Part shown: positions 3,120 to 11,580 of the stretch, piece after piece
How the letters are laid out: each line of letters begins with the position of its first letter
Position numbering within the stretch: the first letter of the stretch is position 1
Source of the DNA: Auanema rhodensis
Taxonomy: Eukaryota > Animalia > Nematoda
Direction: 5' to 3'
DNA: 64,000 nucleotides
Assembly: GCA_964057225.1 (NCBI GenBank)
Contig: OZ059896.1
Location: forward strand, 8,494,001-8,558,000
The notes under the pieces: generated by a model
Told to the model about the DNA's origin: nothing
What the model saw: the letters and a program-made list of their open reading frames with translations, nothing else
Databases searched by the model: none
Translations under genes and position numbers: made by a program

Positions 3120-4587
3120 TTAAAATTCTGAATCCTTATAACGAGCATATACAACTTGACCAATATGGATATATCCCTAAATATATGATTATATGAATAT
3201 TATATTTATAAAGTTTGACATACTGGTTTTAGTAATCCAAGATTCACACCAAAAACTGGATCATCTTTAAACTCAGCACGCATACATCCCTCAGGAACAC
3301 CACGGTATGATCGTAACGTTTGTAGAGGCTGATTGTTCTTATCACGAATTCCAGTTTCAGGATCAACTGTTGTTAGAATACATCTAAAATCAAAGATAAA
3401 TATTGAAAAATTAATAAAAAAATAATTAATGTTCAAATGAAAATACCTTGTGCAAGGACAGCAGCATTGCAACTGTACATCTCCAATACGAAGTTCATCC
3501 CATTTATCTTCATCATAGGCTGGACACTTCTCAATGACTATATTGGGACGGAATGATTTCATTGTAAGCTAAATGTAAAAACAAATTTTTTAAAATAAAT
3601 AAATAAAATATTCAATTTTACTTTTTTCTCCAAACGTGTATTAAGGTCAGTTAAAGAGGCATCCGCAAGAGCCATGTATGGTGCAAGGTCAGAGAATGGA
3701 ACCTGAAAATTTTAATTTTTAAGCTTCTTTTTAGTTTCAACAACATCATACATTAAACTTATTTTTTGGAACAGTATTATTCATCCACCATTCCTTTTTA
3801 GGTACTAATGTACGTTCAGTATATAAATGTTCCATGTATACCACTAAACGGGTATCTAAAAATAATTTGTTTTTATGAAAATTAATTTTAAAAACAAAAA
3901 GTTTACTTGGCTCATCAATATAGTCTGATAATAATTTTGATATCTCTTCACCACAATCAAGACCATCTTGCTTTTTCTTCTCAAACAATCTTGAAAATTT
4001 AAATTTTTTTCTCTAAAATGATACAAATAAAAACTTACGTTGTTCTGATAACTTTATTCTCATTAGTCACTATATTTAGATCAATAACGCAAGTTTTTCC
4101 ATCGGGGAATTTAACTATCAGAGTATTGTCCTTCATTTCTGATTCGATGAGAATCATTTTGGGTTTTTGTCTTGCTGTGTAGAATCTTCAAAGAATATCT
4201 TAAGAAACTAAGCTACTATCCACATCATTACAATCCCGTTTCCCCATTAATAATCTGGAAGAACCTATCTCTCATGCCACCACATTCAACTCCGTATTTT
4301 CCGCAATATAAAGAAAATACCTAGATATAAACAATTCAAGCAGAAACAAATATTAAATATTCTACCTGTTTGGATCTGCAGGATTTTATTGGATATATAT
4401 TCAGCTCTTTGATTATACCAATTGGTACAAAATCTCTGCGTTTTGAAGATTTATACAGCTTATAACCATATTTAGTCACCTGATTAGGAAATTAAATTTA
4501 AAAAAAAAGGAAAAACGTTACATTATAAATGACGAATCCTACTCCAATTGAGAGGGCGAAAGCTTTTTTGTCATCAATCCAAGCCAT
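3120..4587 (-). CDS. MOSC-domain molybdenum cofactor protein (mARC-like)
   Basis: N-terminal hydrophobic anchor (MAWIDDKKAFALSIGVGFVIYN), IYPIKSC, DRFFQII, DLAPYM, FRPNIVIEKCPAYDEDKW, PCTRCILTTVDPETG and PVFGVN are typical MOSC_N/MOSC motifs. Canonical short introns. Confidence 0.92.
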
Positions 4588-5308
4588 AGTAATTGAAATA
4601 TGAGATTTTCTCTGCTATAAAAGCAATATTGTTGAAATAGAACTGAAAGACAGTTAGGTGGTTATTTAGAAAGAAGTCTTTATGATAAGAACTGATAGCA
4701 GAAGAGAAAAACAAATAGTATACAAAGGTCATTAAGATAAATTTGCTGTGTTTAGTTTTTTTTAAACAAACTAACTACAAAATATTTGCTCTTAAATAGA
4801 GTGTAGTTATATAATTGAACACAAATACTACGTGAATTATACTAAATCTACATCTGAAGGAAAACGGTTAAAGTTGTATTTGAAGAGTGTCCTGAGTGGC
4901 GGAACTTGCGGATGGACAATGAACTTTTTCGGTAGAAACAGGCGCCTCGGAAAACGATCAATGTTGTTCGCAAAGAATTAATTTAAATCACCCATGTAGT
5001 TGCTGAAAATCACGTATTTACGATAAACTTTCTTGTTTTCTAATTTTTTTTTCAATTTATTTATATTTTTGGGATAAAAAATGGAAAAGTTTTGACAATT
5101 TGTATTGAAAAATGCGTCTGCGCGTATTTTTAGATGAAGACAAGAGTGTCGGAGTGGGGGGGGGGAGAGTGGAGATAGTTTGATCTCAGTAAATTTATAA
5201 ACAAATAAAGAAAATGAATTTTCGGACCAATTATCAGAAATATACAAAAGACAGTTTATAATGAAATTTGTGAAATAGTTTCAAATCAAACATTATATAA
5301 ATCAAAGA

Positions 5309-8201
5309 ATGTTCTTTCATCTAAGTTTAATCATATTAATTTTTATTAGTTCAACATATACTCAAGAACATATATTAGCCAGGTATATTATATTAAAATT
5401 ATTATAATATTTTTATAATTATATGATAGTTGTCGTTCTGCTACTCATATACGATGTGCTGATGGTTTAACATGCATTCATAAAAAATTTATGTGTGATG
5501 GTAGAATAGATTGCCCTGATCATTCAGATGAGCAATCACATATATGCAATCAACGTGGATTATCAGGATCAATTGTGAGTTCAAAGCATAAAATTTATTT
5601 TGGAAATAATATAAATGCTATTGATATACTCATAAATAATATAAAATATAATATAAGACATATTCTATCTAATACATTAGCCATATATTTCCAATCAGAT
5701 TCTAAACGTTCTTCTTGTCTCGATGATTCATATTTTTCCTAAAAAAAGAATTTTTTATCTTTAAATTATACAAAATATATAAATTATTTTACTTCAAATA
5801 TTAATAATACTTTGATAACTTCATTAATAGCATTTTCCATTTGAGAATAGATTGCTAATTCTTCCATGCTGCCAAAGTTTAAGCTTGATTGTAAAGCCTC
5901 AGCTTGAAAACAGAGTATGAGCTTGTTATAGTTGAAAATATAAAAAAACCTTGTTTTTTTATTTTTTTAGCTCTTTTGAGACTATCATTATGCTCAATAG
6001 TTCCAGATAAATATTGGATAGAAGGTGCTTCTTCCTAAATTATTTTTTATAAAAAATTTGAATTTCATATAATTATAACAAACAGTCATATTTCGTTGTT
6101 GACGTTCAATTCCAGAAGACATTCTGAAGATTCTTGGTAATAGATTCAAAAATATTTCTCTTGTCTATATATAATTATAATTAATAATTATTTTAATGAT
6201 TTCTATCTGAATACTTCATACCCATGGTCCCATTTCTCGTAGTGATCCACTTCGAAAGTGAACGTTCATTATCAGAATAGTTGCACATGTTGAAGCACCC
6301 ATAATACATAATGAAGCTGAGAAGAAAGCAGCTAAAGGAAAATAAAAAAAATTAATTTTTCTTAATTCTCTTACATAAAACTGGAATGGAATCTGAAGTG
6401 GTTGGCGTAGTCATTGCTATCCTAGTGAGGAAAACCAGCGTCGCAAGAACGTTCGTTGTCTCTAAAATGACATTTAGAAAAGAGTCTTATCCTCATCATA
6501 AACAATATAATGGAAAACATTTTTGTTTCAAAACTATTCTCTTATATAATTCTTCATAGAAGTATTATGTAATATGTGGATAACTATAGAAAAATTAACT
6601 AGGAAAAACCAACCAGATTTAAATCAATTTTTTGATTTAAAATGTTCAAATTATAGTAAAACTTAAAGAATATTAAGTTTAATATAATTTATAAAATAAT
6701 ATTAAAACATACGTAAAGTAACTTTTTCTCCTCCAGCTGTTGGCATTATGAATTGTAAAACATTACTCATTGATATGAAAAATGAAGGTACAATCCAATT
6801 TAATGTATAATATAAACTTTTTCTTTTAAGAATTATATAATAATATAATTCTATATATGGTTCTCCATTAAATAATCGTATTGTTCTATTAGCTATAGTT
6901 TCTGAAAAAAAAGTTTTAAGTTTTAGTTTTTAAATTTTCTTTTTTTTTTCACCGATTATATCAAATTCTTCATTAGTTACATAGTATGTCATATCTATAG
7001 TACCAACTCCTTTTTCATTCAGATTAGCTAAATCAAAATCCACGAATGATCCAGAATATGTCCACAGTCCATACTAAGATAATACAACAAGTTATATTCA
7101 AAGTTTTAAGTTTAAAATTACTTTCATAAAACAAATTTGTTCGTCAAATGGAAACCATGTCATACTCATATCACATGATACTGTAACAATACCTGGTGGA
7201 GCAACATATACATCTCCAGTATGAGATACAACACAGTTCACAGAAAATGTTGAATCAAAGTTATTCACACTATGTAATAAAATTAAATTTTGAAATGAAT
7301 ACTTGTATAAACCTGTTGAATAAGAGAACATCAGGTAGCCAAATCATTTTTTTTGGTAACTGTATATCAGTTATGTTACCGTATTCAGATGGATTCCATT
7401 TAAGTTTATAATCTGTCCAACTGATTTGTGACCATACTACAACGGTCATTGCTTGATTCTTTTCGTCCTTTATAATAATAATAATAATAGTTAATAATAT
7501 TATATTATTCAACTTACTACATCAACTATTTGTTGAAGCATTATCTTATGCTTAACAGATAAACTTTCTGAATGATTCTTAATTGGACGTTCGATGACGT
7601 CATAATTTTCTTTAAGATCTTGTATAAGACGATACTCTTCAGAACTTGCAGATGAATTTTTAAAATAAAATAAAATAATTAGAAATTTGAAATAGATCAT
7701 AGATGTATATGAATTTGTGGTGAATGTATGATAGAAGCGTTCAGTTAACGAAATGAATCAACTCATTAATACAAATTGTCAATAAGATTACGAAGTTTTT
7801 GGATGTACAAACATATCTTCTCATGTTTCTTTCTTCTTCTTTTTTTCATTTTATTATAATTTTATAATTATTATTTAATATTTCATTACTCATATAGTAT
7901 ATAGTATATAATTTCAGAAAGGTAGTTCACAAAAATTTTTTTCAACACAAGTCAAGTGTCCACCTAATTGGTTTGCCTGTCAAGATTTATCCAAGTGTCT
8001 TCAACCAAAGCTTGTTTGTGATCAAGTGAAAGATTGCAAGTCTGTATTCATCAGTTCCTTCTTTCATTTTTTAAAATAATTTTTACTTATTTCAATTTAA
8101 TCAGTTATTGATATTTCAGTGATGGATCGGATGAGCGAGAATTTTGTTTTGAACATAGGACAAGAATGATGAGAATTAAAGATCATACAATTGTTTATTA
8201 A
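5309..8201 (+). CDS. Small secreted protein (~140 aa) with two LDL-receptor class A modules; exons 5309-5382, 5430-5574, 7918-8039, 8120-8201
   Basis: Signal peptide MFFHLSLIILIFISSTYT. LDLa1 CRSATHIRCADGLTCIHKKFMCDGRIDCPDHSDE; LDLa2 CPPNWFACQDLSKCLQPKLVCDQVKDCNDGSDE. All splice phases are compatible (423 nt in total). Confidence 0.8.
5595..7700 (-). CDS. eat-2: Nicotinic acetylcholine receptor non-alpha subunit, EAT-2-like (ACR-16 group), nested in intron 2 of the LDLa gene
   Basis: SSEEYRLIQDLKENYDVIERP, WLPDVLLFNS, Cys-loop CDMSMTWFPFDEQIC, loop B WTYSG, no vicinal CC in loop C (TIRLFNGEPYIEL), M1 YYTLNWIVPS, GEK + M2 VTLQTTNVLATLVFL, M4 DWKYMANVLDRICL. Closest recalled sequence is C. elegans EAT-2; could be a paralogue rather than the orthologue. 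Confidence 0.8.
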
Positions 8202-10583
8202 ATTTACAAATATAATTTGATGAAAAAAACTTATTTAAAAAACATTCCTAACTATATTATTTCATTTTATTCTTTTTATTAGTCAATTGTAAAATGATAA
8301 TACTTGTTAAATAAACTTGTCTTTCATCTTCTAATTACAATTCAAGCTTAACACATATATGTATTTATATATTTGTAATAAATAATCTTTTTTTTTTTAA
8401 ATTTTCAATAATAATAATAATTTTGTATTGATTTACATGAAAAATACAAATTTTATGGAAAAGAATTACCACAAGTATTCCTATATCGACTCTATTTTGG
8501 ATCGTCCTTGATAGCTGTTTTAAATAATTTCACTTTTCAATTCAAAATTTTTTGAGATATTTCAATACAAATCTTAATTGGTCAAAAAAATAAAGAAAAT
8601 GAAACTATTTGATTGAATACAATTAGTTTTAGCACCTTGTTAATGACCAATAAAACTTTATTCGTACAAAAGTATAAAGAATAAAAGTTTTTTTTCTAAG
8701 AACACAAGAAAACTTGACCGAACTTTGGTACAGGAAGCTTTACATGTATAAATCTTTTTTATATTTTTGAAACAAGTTTTCAAATAAAAAATATTTTTCA
8801 AATGTAAATATACTGTATTCTATTGTTTTAGAAAAAATATATATATTACAACCTAAAGCTGTTTCTATGTTTGACATTAGGTAACAGCTTGAAACAGAAA
8901 ATAGGAAAGGTGAAGCAGGTGCCCATAAAGAACTAGCATTAAATTAGATTTTTTCATTTCCTTATCTAGCGGTTGAATACATGTTTCATCTCATCATTAG
9001 GCTCGTTTCTCTTCCTTCTCGCTATCTCTCAAGTATTCTCTCCGATCTAAGCTGAGTAAGAGACCAACGATGATGCTAGTGAGACAAAATGACCTTGTCA
9101 AACTGATGTTCTCTCTGTTTTTCTTTGCCCTCTCTCAATCTAGAATAATTCATTTGATAGTTTTAATGAGAGATATTGTGAATAAAAGAGAACATTGAGA
9201 ATGAATAAGGTTGCTGATGTATATCACCTTTGGCGTAAAAATGCCACTGAATTCCTTCATCTTCAAAATAGTTTGAACTATCATTTGAAACAAAACGAGT
9301 AAGGTCGTTTAAGACGAAATAAGAGAACAAATAAGATCAGAATGACTTTATTGTTTATTATTAGGTAGATAGTAGAAGACGAGACAACCAACTTCGTCAA
9401 TGCCATTTGTACTTCCCATTTTCTAGTTCTGTTTTCAATAGTCAAACAAAAAACTGAGAATGCCACTATTTCAAAATATGAACTAAGTTGTTAACTATCT
9501 TACTTATAATTATATAATTAGTGAACTAAAGGATAAAACTGCATAGATAAGAAGACAAATTGAATTAAATCTCTTGCAAATATAATGATTATACAATATA
9601 AATAATATAAATACAAATTTAAAAACTACTACTAGTCAGTCAGGAAGTAGGACTTCCAGTATTTTTTAGTTGTAACATTAGTAGTTGAGTAATCAAAAAT
9701 GATAGGAATGTTCTATTGTATTAACATGATTGTGAACTTTTAAAAATAAAATATTTTATTTTAAAAAATAATATTAAATAATAAAATTAATAAACATAAA
9801 TGCATACATCTATGTATATCGGTTAAGATAATATATATATATTATACAATAATTGTATTTTAATACAAAAATATTACTAAACTTTAATATTTTTATGTTT
9901 GATCCAGTTAACAAAGCAAAAAATGAGATTCATTTGAATTAAAAAAACAGAGAAAATACAACTTCTCTATGAAGTATAGGTGAATCTAATGGTGTTATTA
10001 TAATAAATAAAGAATATTTACATAAATATCTATCGATTTTTAAAGAAAATTACTTAAATTTGCAGCTAATTTATAGATTATAAGAACGAAATATGAACTT
10101 AAAGGTTATATTAATGTACTGTTAGTTTTCCATTCAACATTCATGTAACACTCGATGATAAAATCGAAATGGTAACGAATAAACATATGGTTACATACAT
10201 AGATTACATATACGGGTAACTATGTCAAAATATATAAATAGTTTTAAATTTTTCTCAGATATATATATAGGTATTCCAGCTATTCCTTTCTTTAACCTCT
10301 TTCTAACCTTATTCTCATTCTTTCCTGAGTTTTCTTAAGTGGAAGTATTAATAACTGCAATCTAAAAAACTGAACGTATCCGGTAATAGATCGGAAAATC
10401 TTCCAATCAACCCAAAATGTACGAAGAATTATGCAGAGAACTTCGAAATTGCATAGAGTCCAAGTCAAAAGCCTGTTTTTTGTGCGTCAGCCTTGCCGTT
10501 GAGGAGGAGGACTCGATTGGGCGGTGCTAGGGATGGTTGATGCGGCTGGGGCGGTGACGACACGTCAAGGTGACGAACCCAGC

Positions 10584-10590
10584 TATATAA
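10584..10590 (+). promoter_or_regulatory. TATA box of collagen gene 1
   Basis: TATATAA about 40 nt upstream of the ATG at 10630, at the end of a GC-rich proximal promoter segment. Confidence 0.6.
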
Positions 10591-10629
10591 GGAGCTGATT
10601 GGACCCCAGAAAACAAGGTGTCCTGAGAC

Positions 10630-11580
10630 ATGGATCTTGAGCATCGTATTAAGGCTTACCGCTTCGTCGCCTATTCGGCTGTGACCTTCTCTGTGGTCGC
10701 AGTCCTTTCGGTCTGCGTCACTCTTCCCATGGTCTACAACTATGTTCACCATGTCAAGAGATCCATGCACAACGAAATCAACTTCTGCAAGGGATCCGCC
10801 AAGGATATCTGGTCCGAGGTTAACCATTTGAAGAACATGCCAGCCGGAAACAGAACTGCCCGTCAAGCCGGTTACGGAGATGCCGGAGTTAGCGGAGGAT
10901 CCGGAACTGCTGGAGGATGTGATGCTTGCTGTCTCCCAGGAGCCGCTGGACCAGCTGGTACCCCAGGAAAGCCAGGAAGACCAGGAAAGCCAGGAGCTCC
11001 AGGACTCCCAGGAAACCCAGGACGTCCACCTCAGCAACCATGTGACCCAATCACTCCACCACCATGCAAGCCATGCCCAGCTGGACCACCAGGACCACCA
11101 GGACAGCCAGGACCTTCCGGAGATGCTGGACTTCCAGGACAACCAGGACAACCAGGACAAGACGCTGCCCCAGGACAGCCAGGACCAAAGGGAGCCCCAG
11201 GACCAGCCGGAAACCCAGGAGCCCCAGGAGCCCCAGGACAACCAGGACAAGACGCTCCATCCGAGCCAATCCTCCCAGGAGAGCCAGGACCACAAGGAGC
11301 TCCAGGACCACAAGGACCACCAGGACAACCAGGACAACCAGGACAAGACGGAGCTCCAGGTAAATAACAATCCTTTATAACAAATCTTATTCACATATCA
11401 ATTGTAGGACAAGCTGGACCAAAGGGACCAAACGGACAACCTGGACAACCAGGAGCCGACGGAAACCCAGGAGCCCCAGGACCAGCTGGACCACCAGGAG
11501 GACCAGGAGAGAAGGGTATCTGCCCCAAGTACTGCGCCATCGACGGAGGTGTCTTCTTCGAGGACGGAACACGCCGTTAA
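10630..11580 (+). CDS. Nematode cuticle collagen (one intron, 11360-11407)
   Basis: Col_cuticle_N region [35 protein letters not shown] cleavage site, CDACC, Gly-X-Y repeats, C-terminus [24 protein letters not shown]. Confidence 0.97.

Follow-up and report, generated by a model that had tools for sequence, protein, structure and literature searches.

An EAT-2-like receptor gene predicted to be nested antisense within the gene for a small secreted LDLa protein of Auanema

When a complete receptor gene lies inside the intron of a gene for a secreted protein, it may be asked whether the two products work together or whether the genes are neighbors of independent function. Such a locus was noticed at positions 5309 to 8201 of the window analyzed here, a stretch of 64,000 nucleotides of Auanema rhodensis (hereafter A. 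rhodense; contig OZ059896.1, positions 8,494,001 to 8,558,000). A preliminary description proposed that an EAT-2-like nicotinic acetylcholine receptor (nAChR) gene fills the second intron of a gene for a secreted protein with two LDLa modules (2xLDLa), and offered two explanations, a module formed by a receptor and its secreted modulator or a recent transposition of an eat-2 paralogue into an unrelated host gene.

On the minus strand, between an ATG at 7700 and a stop codon at 5595, we found an intact 11-exon gene of 1413 nt encoding a cys-loop receptor subunit of 470 aa (Table 1). GT-AG boundaries are present at 10 of 10 introns, nine of which measure 43–57 bp, the exception being intron 5. 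This agrees, coordinates included, with the earlier claim of a complete multi-exon channel gene at 5595-7700 within an intron at 5575-7917. Pfam scoring was done exon by exon; exons 1 to 3 all lie above the cut-off of 26 for Neur_chan_LBD (PF02931), while the transmembrane exons other than exon 11 are too short to be scored singly. By alignment, the Cys-loop of exon 3 corresponds to those of EAT-2, ACR-16 and alpha7, and segments M1 to M4 align with those of homologues, with the 9' Leu and the GEK motif retained. A scan for poly(A) signals revealed AATAAA at 5599-5594, overlapping the receptor stop codon and only 20 nt from host exon 2, so that the receptor UTR may overlap with this exon. No Rfam match was found across positions 4500-9000, the long receptor intron included, and this intron contained no convincing repeat either.

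Table 1. Features of the nested gene pair, in positions of the window; "host" denotes the 2xLDLa gene.
Feature	Positions	Strand	Description
Host exon 1	5309..5382	+	Start codon, hydrophobic signal peptide; 74 nt long, phase 2 at its end, donor GTATAT
Host exon 2	5430..5574	+	Entire LDLa module 1, with six Cys and a DxSDE calcium cage, and linker; PF00057 42.9 bits
Host intron 2 (predicted)	5575..7917	+	2343 bp, phase 0, follows codon 73 and separates the LDLa modules
Host exon 3	7918..8039	+	Linker and LDLa module 2 up to its fourth cysteine; PF00057 24.1 bits for this exon alone, exactly at the cut-off
Host exon 4	8120..8201	+	Remainder of module 2, basic tail of 17 residues, stop codon
Receptor exon 1	7518..7700	-	Start codon, signal peptide, start of ligand-binding domain; Neur_chan_LBD 26.6 bits
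Receptor exon 2	7313..7467	-	Ligand-binding domain, loops D and A; Neur_chan_LBD 65.3 bits
Receptor exon 3	7122..7269	-	Ligand-binding domain, Cys-loop C-x13-C; Pfam 52.0 bits
Receptor exon 4	6953..7073	-	Loop B Trp, loop F, first part of loop C, no vicinal cysteines
Receptor exon 5	6713..6901	-	End of loop C, M1, M1-M2 loop PTAGGEK
Receptor intron 5	6462..6712	-	251 bp, about 5 times as long as the remaining nine introns
Receptor exon 6	6375..6461	-	Pore helix M2; 9' Leu retained, 17' Arg, 20' Met
Receptor exon 7	6222..6331	-	M3
Receptor exon 8	6084..6164	-	Beginning of M3-M4 cytoplasmic loop
Receptor exon 9	5950..6034	-	Cytoplasmic loop
Receptor exon 10	5793..5902	-	Cytoplasmic loop, MA helix region
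Receptor exon 11	5595..5738	-	End of loop, M4, stop codon; Neur_chan_memb (PF02932) 26.9 bits for this exon alone, below the 28.1 cut-off

The tree, for which joined translations were made locally as for the alignment and the frame checks, placed the receptor inside the EAT-2 clade (21 rows, 100/100), apart from the ACR-16, ACR-15 and alpha7 types, and more specifically in a 10-row clade of clade-V EAT-2 sequences (96/96). Within the latter, it forms with its A. melissensis orthologue, CAI4225910.1 (P0001), a clade of their own (100/100) on a stem of 1.5. In the alignment, loop C of the receptor has neither vicinal cysteines nor a YxCC motif and is of the non-alpha type, the defining trait of EAT-2 (PMC7173930); together with the tree, this bears out the designation as an EAT-2-like nAChR. 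EAT-2 acts at the MC-to-pharyngeal-muscle synapse; in C. elegans, it is a non-alpha pharyngeal nAChR subunit that requires EAT-18 (PMC7173930). Like it, the window receptor carries the tryptophans of loops B and D, an EPY-type tyrosine in loop C and the GEK intermediate ring; in contrast, its M3-M4 loop is shorter than that of canonical EAT-2.

A one-to-one eat-2 orthologue could be ruled out, the receptor being a separate long-branch paralogue; the canonical orthologue of this genome lies on another contig (G000 C5:8.69 Mb), and its partner in the tree is A. melissensis P0152. Identity of the window receptor is 56% to this canonical copy and 43% to C. remanei EAT-2, and receptor exon 2 has two close paralogues in the genome (67% and 63% identity). 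Exon by exon, matches between nested and canonical copy stop at identical exon boundaries. Between A. rhodense and A. melissensis, the nested type is 74.5% identical (77% for exon 5 against P0001), compared to 95.3% for canonical EAT-2 (P0152), and the corresponding tree paths are 0.73 and 0.11, the nested copy evolving at about 5–7 times the rate of canonical EAT-2. The nested type is also marked by a derived signature in M1-M2 and M2, found in 4 of 259 retrieved proteins, Logan-derived ones among them: the M1-M2 loop reads PTAGGEK where canonical EAT-2 has PPECGEK, and the M2 signature of exon 6 is shared by the window receptor with P0001, P0003 and P0151 only. The paralogue is thus present in A. 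melissensis and in at least one further taxon from Logan assemblies. By these sequence comparisons, the window receptor is a fast-evolving eat-2 duplicate common to A. rhodense and A. melissensis.

Changes in the pore accompany this divergence. Two of the three charge rings, the cytoplasmic (-4') and the extracellular (20') one, are lost in the alignment, while the -1' Glu is retained. At -4', Ala stands in place of Glu; at 20', Asp/Glu has become Met in the window receptor and Lys in the A. melissensis copy; position 17' of the nested type is Arg or Gln. Loss of two rings, a long branch and the elevated rate would be expected of a duplicate that is decaying and has no function. We consider this reading extremely unlikely, as all 11 receptor exons have open frames and canonical splice sites, the Cys-loop, the tryptophans of loops B and D, the 9' Leu and the -1' Glu are all preserved, and the derived signature recurs in A. 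melissensis and the more distant Logan taxon. Such conservation points to constraint that followed an initial burst of change. From the EAT-2 pattern of the binding site, the -1' Glu and the intact gene, we infer that the nested receptor remains an acetylcholine-gated cation channel subunit; the loss of the rings would then make it a subunit of low conductance or a modulatory one, possibly co-assembling with EAT-2.

On the plus strand, four exons join to an open reading frame of 423 nt, encoding a predicted protein of 140 aa with 12 cysteines, a signal peptide (called by eye) and two complete LDLa modules. Host exon 3 covers positions 2-28 of the 37 of the PF00057 profile and exon 4 gives the remainder, the second module being completed over the exon 3/4 junction through a split Asn codon. 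Local translation showed that both modules match the class-A pattern of cysteines and acidic residues, with a DxxxDxxDxSDE calcium cage and the motifs DHSDE and DGSDE. LDLa was the only domain that Pfam found in the host exons, CUB being absent, and no hydrophobic segment, hence no transmembrane segment, was present beyond the signal peptide. Host exon 2 occurs once in the genome and its top PDB matches are modules of LRP2 and LDLR. The host protein would be a generic LDLa-type extracellular, calcium-dependent binder.

Relatives of the host were sought in several collections. The nearest LDLa paralogues within the genome, L002 and L007, are LRP-like multi-module genes with neither CUB nor a link to lev-10. 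Metagenome matches to host exon 2 (JAAUXV01 contigs, GC 37–40%) were rejected as orthologues, being generic tandem LDLa arrays with no receptor exon nearby. No counterpart of host exons 1-2 was found among collection proteins of 57-180 aa by a search with exon 2, a weak negative because this search depends on shared words. Exons 3-4, on the other hand, have a counterpart in A. melissensis, CAI4225913.1 (P0260), a protein of 69 aa with 81% identity (35 of 40 residues in exon 3, 18 of 26 in exon 4, same C-terminus) which also carries PF00057. The host gene is best regarded as small and lineage-restricted.

Whether the locus is nested at all depends on the junction between 5574 and 7918, a prediction of the gene model. 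Its donor is GTGAGT, its acceptor TTTCAG, and the phases match (0/0). Among the 124 AG acceptors past this donor, the one preceding 7918 is alone in joining a pyrimidine-rich acceptor, an open frame and the LDLa domain. The intron so defined would contain the entire receptor coding sequence and leave 20 nt free on one side of it and 217 nt on the other side. Exons 1-2 and 3-4 could instead be two separate units, or one half a relic, with the receptor simply lying between them. In favor of this, the junction is a prediction, the reading frame of exon 2 runs on past the donor for 55 codons, the A. melissensis annotation has exons 3-4 alone as a 69-aa protein, and the search described above found no counterpart of exon 2. 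We regard this reading as unlikely. In the window, exon 3 lacks an ATG in its frame and is preceded by the acceptor codons TTT CAG; it therefore needs an upstream exon. An alternative first exon inside the intron was considered and rejected, the sole candidate with a good donor being an unsupported 13-codon piece antisense to receptor exon 6. Exons 1-2, for their part, encode a signal peptide and an intact module and end in a consensus donor of matching phase, and an LDLa module that lacks a signal peptide could not form its disulfides. P0260 begins with Met-Gln exactly at the position of the TTT CAG acceptor of the window and has no signal peptide, so that the 69-aa model looks like an annotation artefact. 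Gene predictors frequently break up a host gene where another gene is nested in it. The arrangement of the preliminary description, in which the receptor is nested antisense between the LDLa modules of a secreted protein of 140 aa, is supported as a gene model.

The A. melissensis models also bear on the age of the association. CAI4225910.1 and CAI4225913.1 each lie on a contig of 108,608 bp and their accessions are three apart, CAI4225911 and CAI4225912 being the models that stand between them in accession order. With both counterparts apparently on one contig, the linkage of receptor and LDLa gene is very probably older than A. rhodense and predates the split between A. rhodense and A. melissensis; this statement concerns linkage and not exact nesting. 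In the A. melissensis annotation, both partners are present as truncated models, of 301 aa (receptor) and 69 aa (LDLa protein).

Does the host protein act on the receptor that its gene encloses? The background cited for this idea in the preliminary description, concerning LEV-10, EAT-18 and the lev-10 locus, agrees with the literature (PMC7173930). In C. elegans, the lev-10/eat-18 locus likewise has a gene related to cholinergic receptors in an intron of a gene for an extracellular LDLa protein, with both products auxiliary, on the same strand and with lev-10 exons shared in another frame (PMC7173930). Here, in contrast, the nested gene, on the opposite strand, has no exon in common with its host and encodes a receptor subunit. 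A LEV-10-type clustering protein combines CUB domains, LDLa and a transmembrane anchor, and the host, at 140 aa and with neither CUB nor anchor, could be ruled out as one. NRAP-1, an auxiliary protein of NMDA receptors, is closer in being a secreted protein of about 18 kDa built around a single LDLa module, with a DxY/FDE motif, and by a conserved, helical C-terminal domain about 107 residues long (PMC11531325). The host resembles it as a small secreted protein built around LDLa but has two modules with canonical DxSDE motifs and a tail of 17 residues, and NRAP-1 acts on glutamate receptors; the NRAP-1 structure (8v14) matched at 21 bits (E = 0.0025), compared to 50–183 bits for LRP2 and LDLR modules. 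By these features, the host is not of the NRAP-1 type either.

These comparisons weigh on the proposal that the nested EAT-2-like receptor is clustered or gated by the 2xLDLa protein, bound to its extracellular face, with nesting preserving their co-inheritance or co-regulation. The action of the LDLa protein LEV-10 on levamisole AChRs (PMC7173930) and the gating of NMDARs by NRAP-1 (PMC11531325), a case of a small secreted LDLa protein that is a true auxiliary ligand of an ionotropic receptor, speak for it, as do the lineage restriction of both genes and the single contig of their A. melissensis counterparts. Against it stand the absence from the host of CUB, a transmembrane segment and an NRAP-1-type helical C-domain, the canonical DxSDE motifs in place of DxY/FDE, the low NRAP-1 score, and the separate promoters and opposite strands of the two genes. 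Moreover, a nested pair stays linked even when linkage is not selected, because breaking the pair would break the host gene. We therefore hold such an interaction to be quite improbable, and the receptor-plus-modulator idea is speculation. Its more specific form, that the orphan 2xLDLa protein is a dedicated partner, an NRAP-1-like auxiliary ligand or clustering factor, and that the pair co-originated in the Auanema lineage and is kept in co-inheritance by nesting, appears very improbable.

The best explanation, to which we assign a probability of roughly 0.68, is that of an ordinary nested gene pair, an eat-2 duplicate in a lineage-restricted 2xLDLa gene, for which functional coupling is not needed. 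Nested genes typically arise from young duplicates landing in introns (PMC5174743). The gene for the pharyngeal non-alpha nicotinic receptor subunit EAT-2 would have been duplicated at the DNA level before the split between A. rhodense and A. melissensis, retaining the parental intron positions, and the duplicate, with its own 5' flank, would have come to sit, putatively by insertion, inside intron 2 of the gene for the secreted 2xLDLa protein, the two genes presumably keeping separate promoters on opposite strands. As in other nested pairs (PMC5174743, PMC3814207), the duplicate lies wholly in an intron of an opposite-strand host and the partners are unrelated in sequence. The difference is that the nested gene nearly fills its intron and no long intron was there before it; introns in this genomic stretch are mostly about 50 bp long. 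A repeat search around the nested gene found no target-site duplication or terminal repeats, only AT-rich chance matches, which is expected for an old event, yet leaves the insertion itself inferred. Of the recent transposition into an unrelated host that had been suggested, the eat-2 paralogue and the unrelated host are thus closer to the evidence, while "recent" does not hold for a paralogue that is also present in A. melissensis and in the Logan taxon.

In conclusion, EAT-2 is discussed as a nematode-specific target for drugs and pesticides, and a fast-evolving, lineage-specific duplicate with altered pore charge rings offers a natural experiment, on a small scale, in how much change the scaffold of this non-alpha subunit can bear. 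For annotation, such a locus is a trap, as the two truncated A. melissensis models illustrate. Were the LDLa protein to modulate the receptor, the principle of NRAP-1 would be extended to cys-loop receptors.

The rebuilt gene models agreed with the coordinates and layout of the preliminary description: the complete coding sequence of the EAT-2-like nAChR subunit (the receptor) lies wholly inside intron 2 of the plus-strand LDLa host gene, between its two LDLa modules. All receptor introns are GT-AG; nine measure 43-57 bp, and the remaining one, intron 5, is much longer, though searches of it yielded neither an Rfam family nor a convincing repeat. The local base composition is AT-rich, with a GC content of 22-45% in exons and 6-26% in introns. 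Pfam searches were run exon by exon, and joined proteins were used solely in local scripts. Neur_chan_LBD was detected in receptor exons 1, 2 and 3 (26.6, 65.3 and 52.0 bits) and Neur_chan_memb in the final exon (26.9 bits), while the M1-M3 exons, being short, fall below scoring alone yet can be aligned with homologues.

Predicted features of the A. rhodense window
Feature	Position	Strand	Evidence or extent
MOSC-domain gene	3206-4479	-	MOSC 35.5 bits, MOSC_N 19.5 bits, single exons
Host exon 1	5309-5382	+	
Host exon 2	5430-5574	+	full LDLa module (PF00057, 42.9 bits)
Host intron 2	5575-7917	+	encloses receptor
Receptor, ATG to stop	7700-5595	-	11 exons, 1413 nt, 470 aa
Receptor intron 5	6462-6712	-	251 bp
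Host exon 3	7918-8039	+	PF00057 24.1 bits, profile positions 2-28 of 37
Host exon 4	8120-8201	+	
GC-rich island	10500-11500		55-58% GC vs about 25-30% around
Cuticle collagen gene	10630-11367	+	Col_cuticle_N 75 bits, Collagen repeats 68 bits

Against a representative library, the best match of receptor exon 5 was P0001 (CAI4225910.1, 77% identity), a model from A. melissensis, the species also known as Auanema sp. JU1783 (PMC9984802), that ends just past M2. Its nearest relatives are EAT-2-named proteins (55-60%), with ACR-16, ACR-15 and alpha7 types at 37-44%. In the A. rhodense genome (180,911,798 bases searched), exon 2 has close paralogues in two places, C5:8.69 Mb (67% identity) and C4:16.33 Mb (63%). 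Placement relied on a maximum-likelihood tree with 33 rows, comprising the window model, two exon-wise partial paralogue models and 30 hand-picked proteins, with fragmentary Logan read-assembly sequences and most vertebrate alpha7 rows left out. The window gene and P0001 paired at 100/100 on a long stem (1.5), nested within a group of clade-V EAT-2 proteins supported at 96/96, a placement that, together with the missing vicinal cysteines, bears out the label "EAT-2-like". The C5 copy, which is the canonical eat-2 orthologue, had A. melissensis P0152 as its partner, the branches between them being very short. The C4 copy (L011, C4:16333359-16333517) grouped with the Heterorhabditis protein P0022, outside EAT-2 proper; L011 is a third EAT-2-related subunit gene, and together with P0022 it makes up a lineage that is sister to EAT-2 proper.

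Between the two Auanema species, identity is 95.3% for the canonical copy vs 74.5% for the nested type, and the tree path 0.11 vs 0.73. The tree and these identities identify the window gene as an EAT-2 paralogue that predates the species split and has evolved several times faster than the canonical copy, an age at odds with the "recent" event first proposed. Of 259 retrieved proteins, only 4 carry the derived M1-M2 and M2 signature, namely P0001 and three Logan-derived fragments. In exon 5 the identity of these fragments is no higher than 58-62%, which places the paralogue in at least one more distant taxon and thus beyond the two named species. The Logan-derived P0002, P0003, P0151 and P0254 are of the nested type in exon 5 and share the M2 signature.

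In the alignment, the receptor lacks vicinal cysteines, as does EAT-2, and retains the tryptophans of loops B and D together with the Cys-loop, 9' Leu and -1' Glu, all described EAT-2 traits (PMC7173930); that this copy is decaying is very improbable. Its pore differs from that of EAT-2 at -4' (Glu to Ala) and 20' (Asp/Glu to Met; Lys in A. melissensis), and 17' is Arg or Gln in the nested type. The three pore charge rings have a classical role in channel conductance. Given that role and these changes, we infer a low-conductance cation channel subunit, which may work in heteromers with EAT-2.

The four host exons join in frame into 140 aa with a hydrophobic N-terminus and 12 cysteines, and the rest of the second LDLa module comes from exon 4, with an Asn codon split between exons 3 and 4. 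The consensus donor at 5575 is followed by 124 AG acceptors, of which only 7918 is both pyrimidine-rich and followed by an open frame with an LDLa domain. Exon 3 retrieved the A. melissensis protein P0260 (CAI4225913.1, PF00057), with 35/40 identities along exon 3 and 18/26 along exon 4; as the junction Asn and C-terminus are also conserved, conservation extends to the splice between exons 3 and 4 and to the second module. The Met-Gln start of P0260 aligns exactly with TTT CAG in the window, which is the splice acceptor. Because the window has no start codon at this position, and a signal-less module makes little sense, exon 3 would have to be spliced to an upstream exon. An exon 2 counterpart was not found among proteins of 57-180 aa, a weak negative because the search relies on shared words. 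Each LDLa exon is single-copy in the genome. Overall, the predicted four-exon model is likely correct, and a split host gene, or one with a relic half, is unlikely.

P0001 and P0260 are each found on a single contig 108,608 bp long, with accession numbers three apart, which makes it almost certain that the two are close neighbours on one contig. Two further models fall between them in accession order, and the linkage thus stops short of demonstrating exact nesting in A. melissensis. Both models look truncated (301 and 69 aa), the outcome we would expect where a gene predictor cannot put one gene inside another's intron. P0001 runs 8 codons into the intron past exon 6 and then stops; P0260 has its start ATG on the acceptor position and no signal peptide.

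The nested gene has its own 5' flank of 217 bp. At its other end, an AATAAA that overlaps the stop codon lies 20 nt from host exon 2; the receptor therefore takes up nearly the whole intron, and its 3' end may reach the host exon. Repeats marking an insertion were not found around it. In the literature, nested pairs are described as originating mainly when young duplicates land in introns, and the transcription of such pairs as interfering, not cooperating (PMC5174743). The preliminary description had proposed a receptor-plus-modulator module, for which there are precedents in LEV-10 (PMC7173930) and, more closely, in NRAP-1, a secreted protein with a single LDLa module, which gates NMDA receptors (PMC11531325). 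The host protein, however, lacks the defining features of both, and position is its sole link to the receptor. Within the genome, exon 2 comes closest to modules in LRP-like genes (43-52% identity), near which no CUB domains were found, and its best PDB matches are LRP2 and LDLR modules. We consider a functional module improbable and favour an ordinary nested pair, with a probability of roughly 0.7; nesting between the LDLa modules holds as a predicted model.

Upstream, the MOSC gene is a minus-strand neighbour divergent to the host gene. The GC-rich island corresponds to the nematode cuticle collagen gene. A 2026 preprint on programmed DNA elimination describes an A. rhodense germline assembly of 180.9 Mb (bioRxiv 10.64898/2026.08.27.747507); the gene-dense window presumably lies within retained DNA.

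In conclusion, the receptor adds a new, divergent member to the EAT-2 family, in what is probably an ordinary nested arrangement; its interest is modest and lies chiefly in receptor evolution and in the trap it sets for gene annotation.
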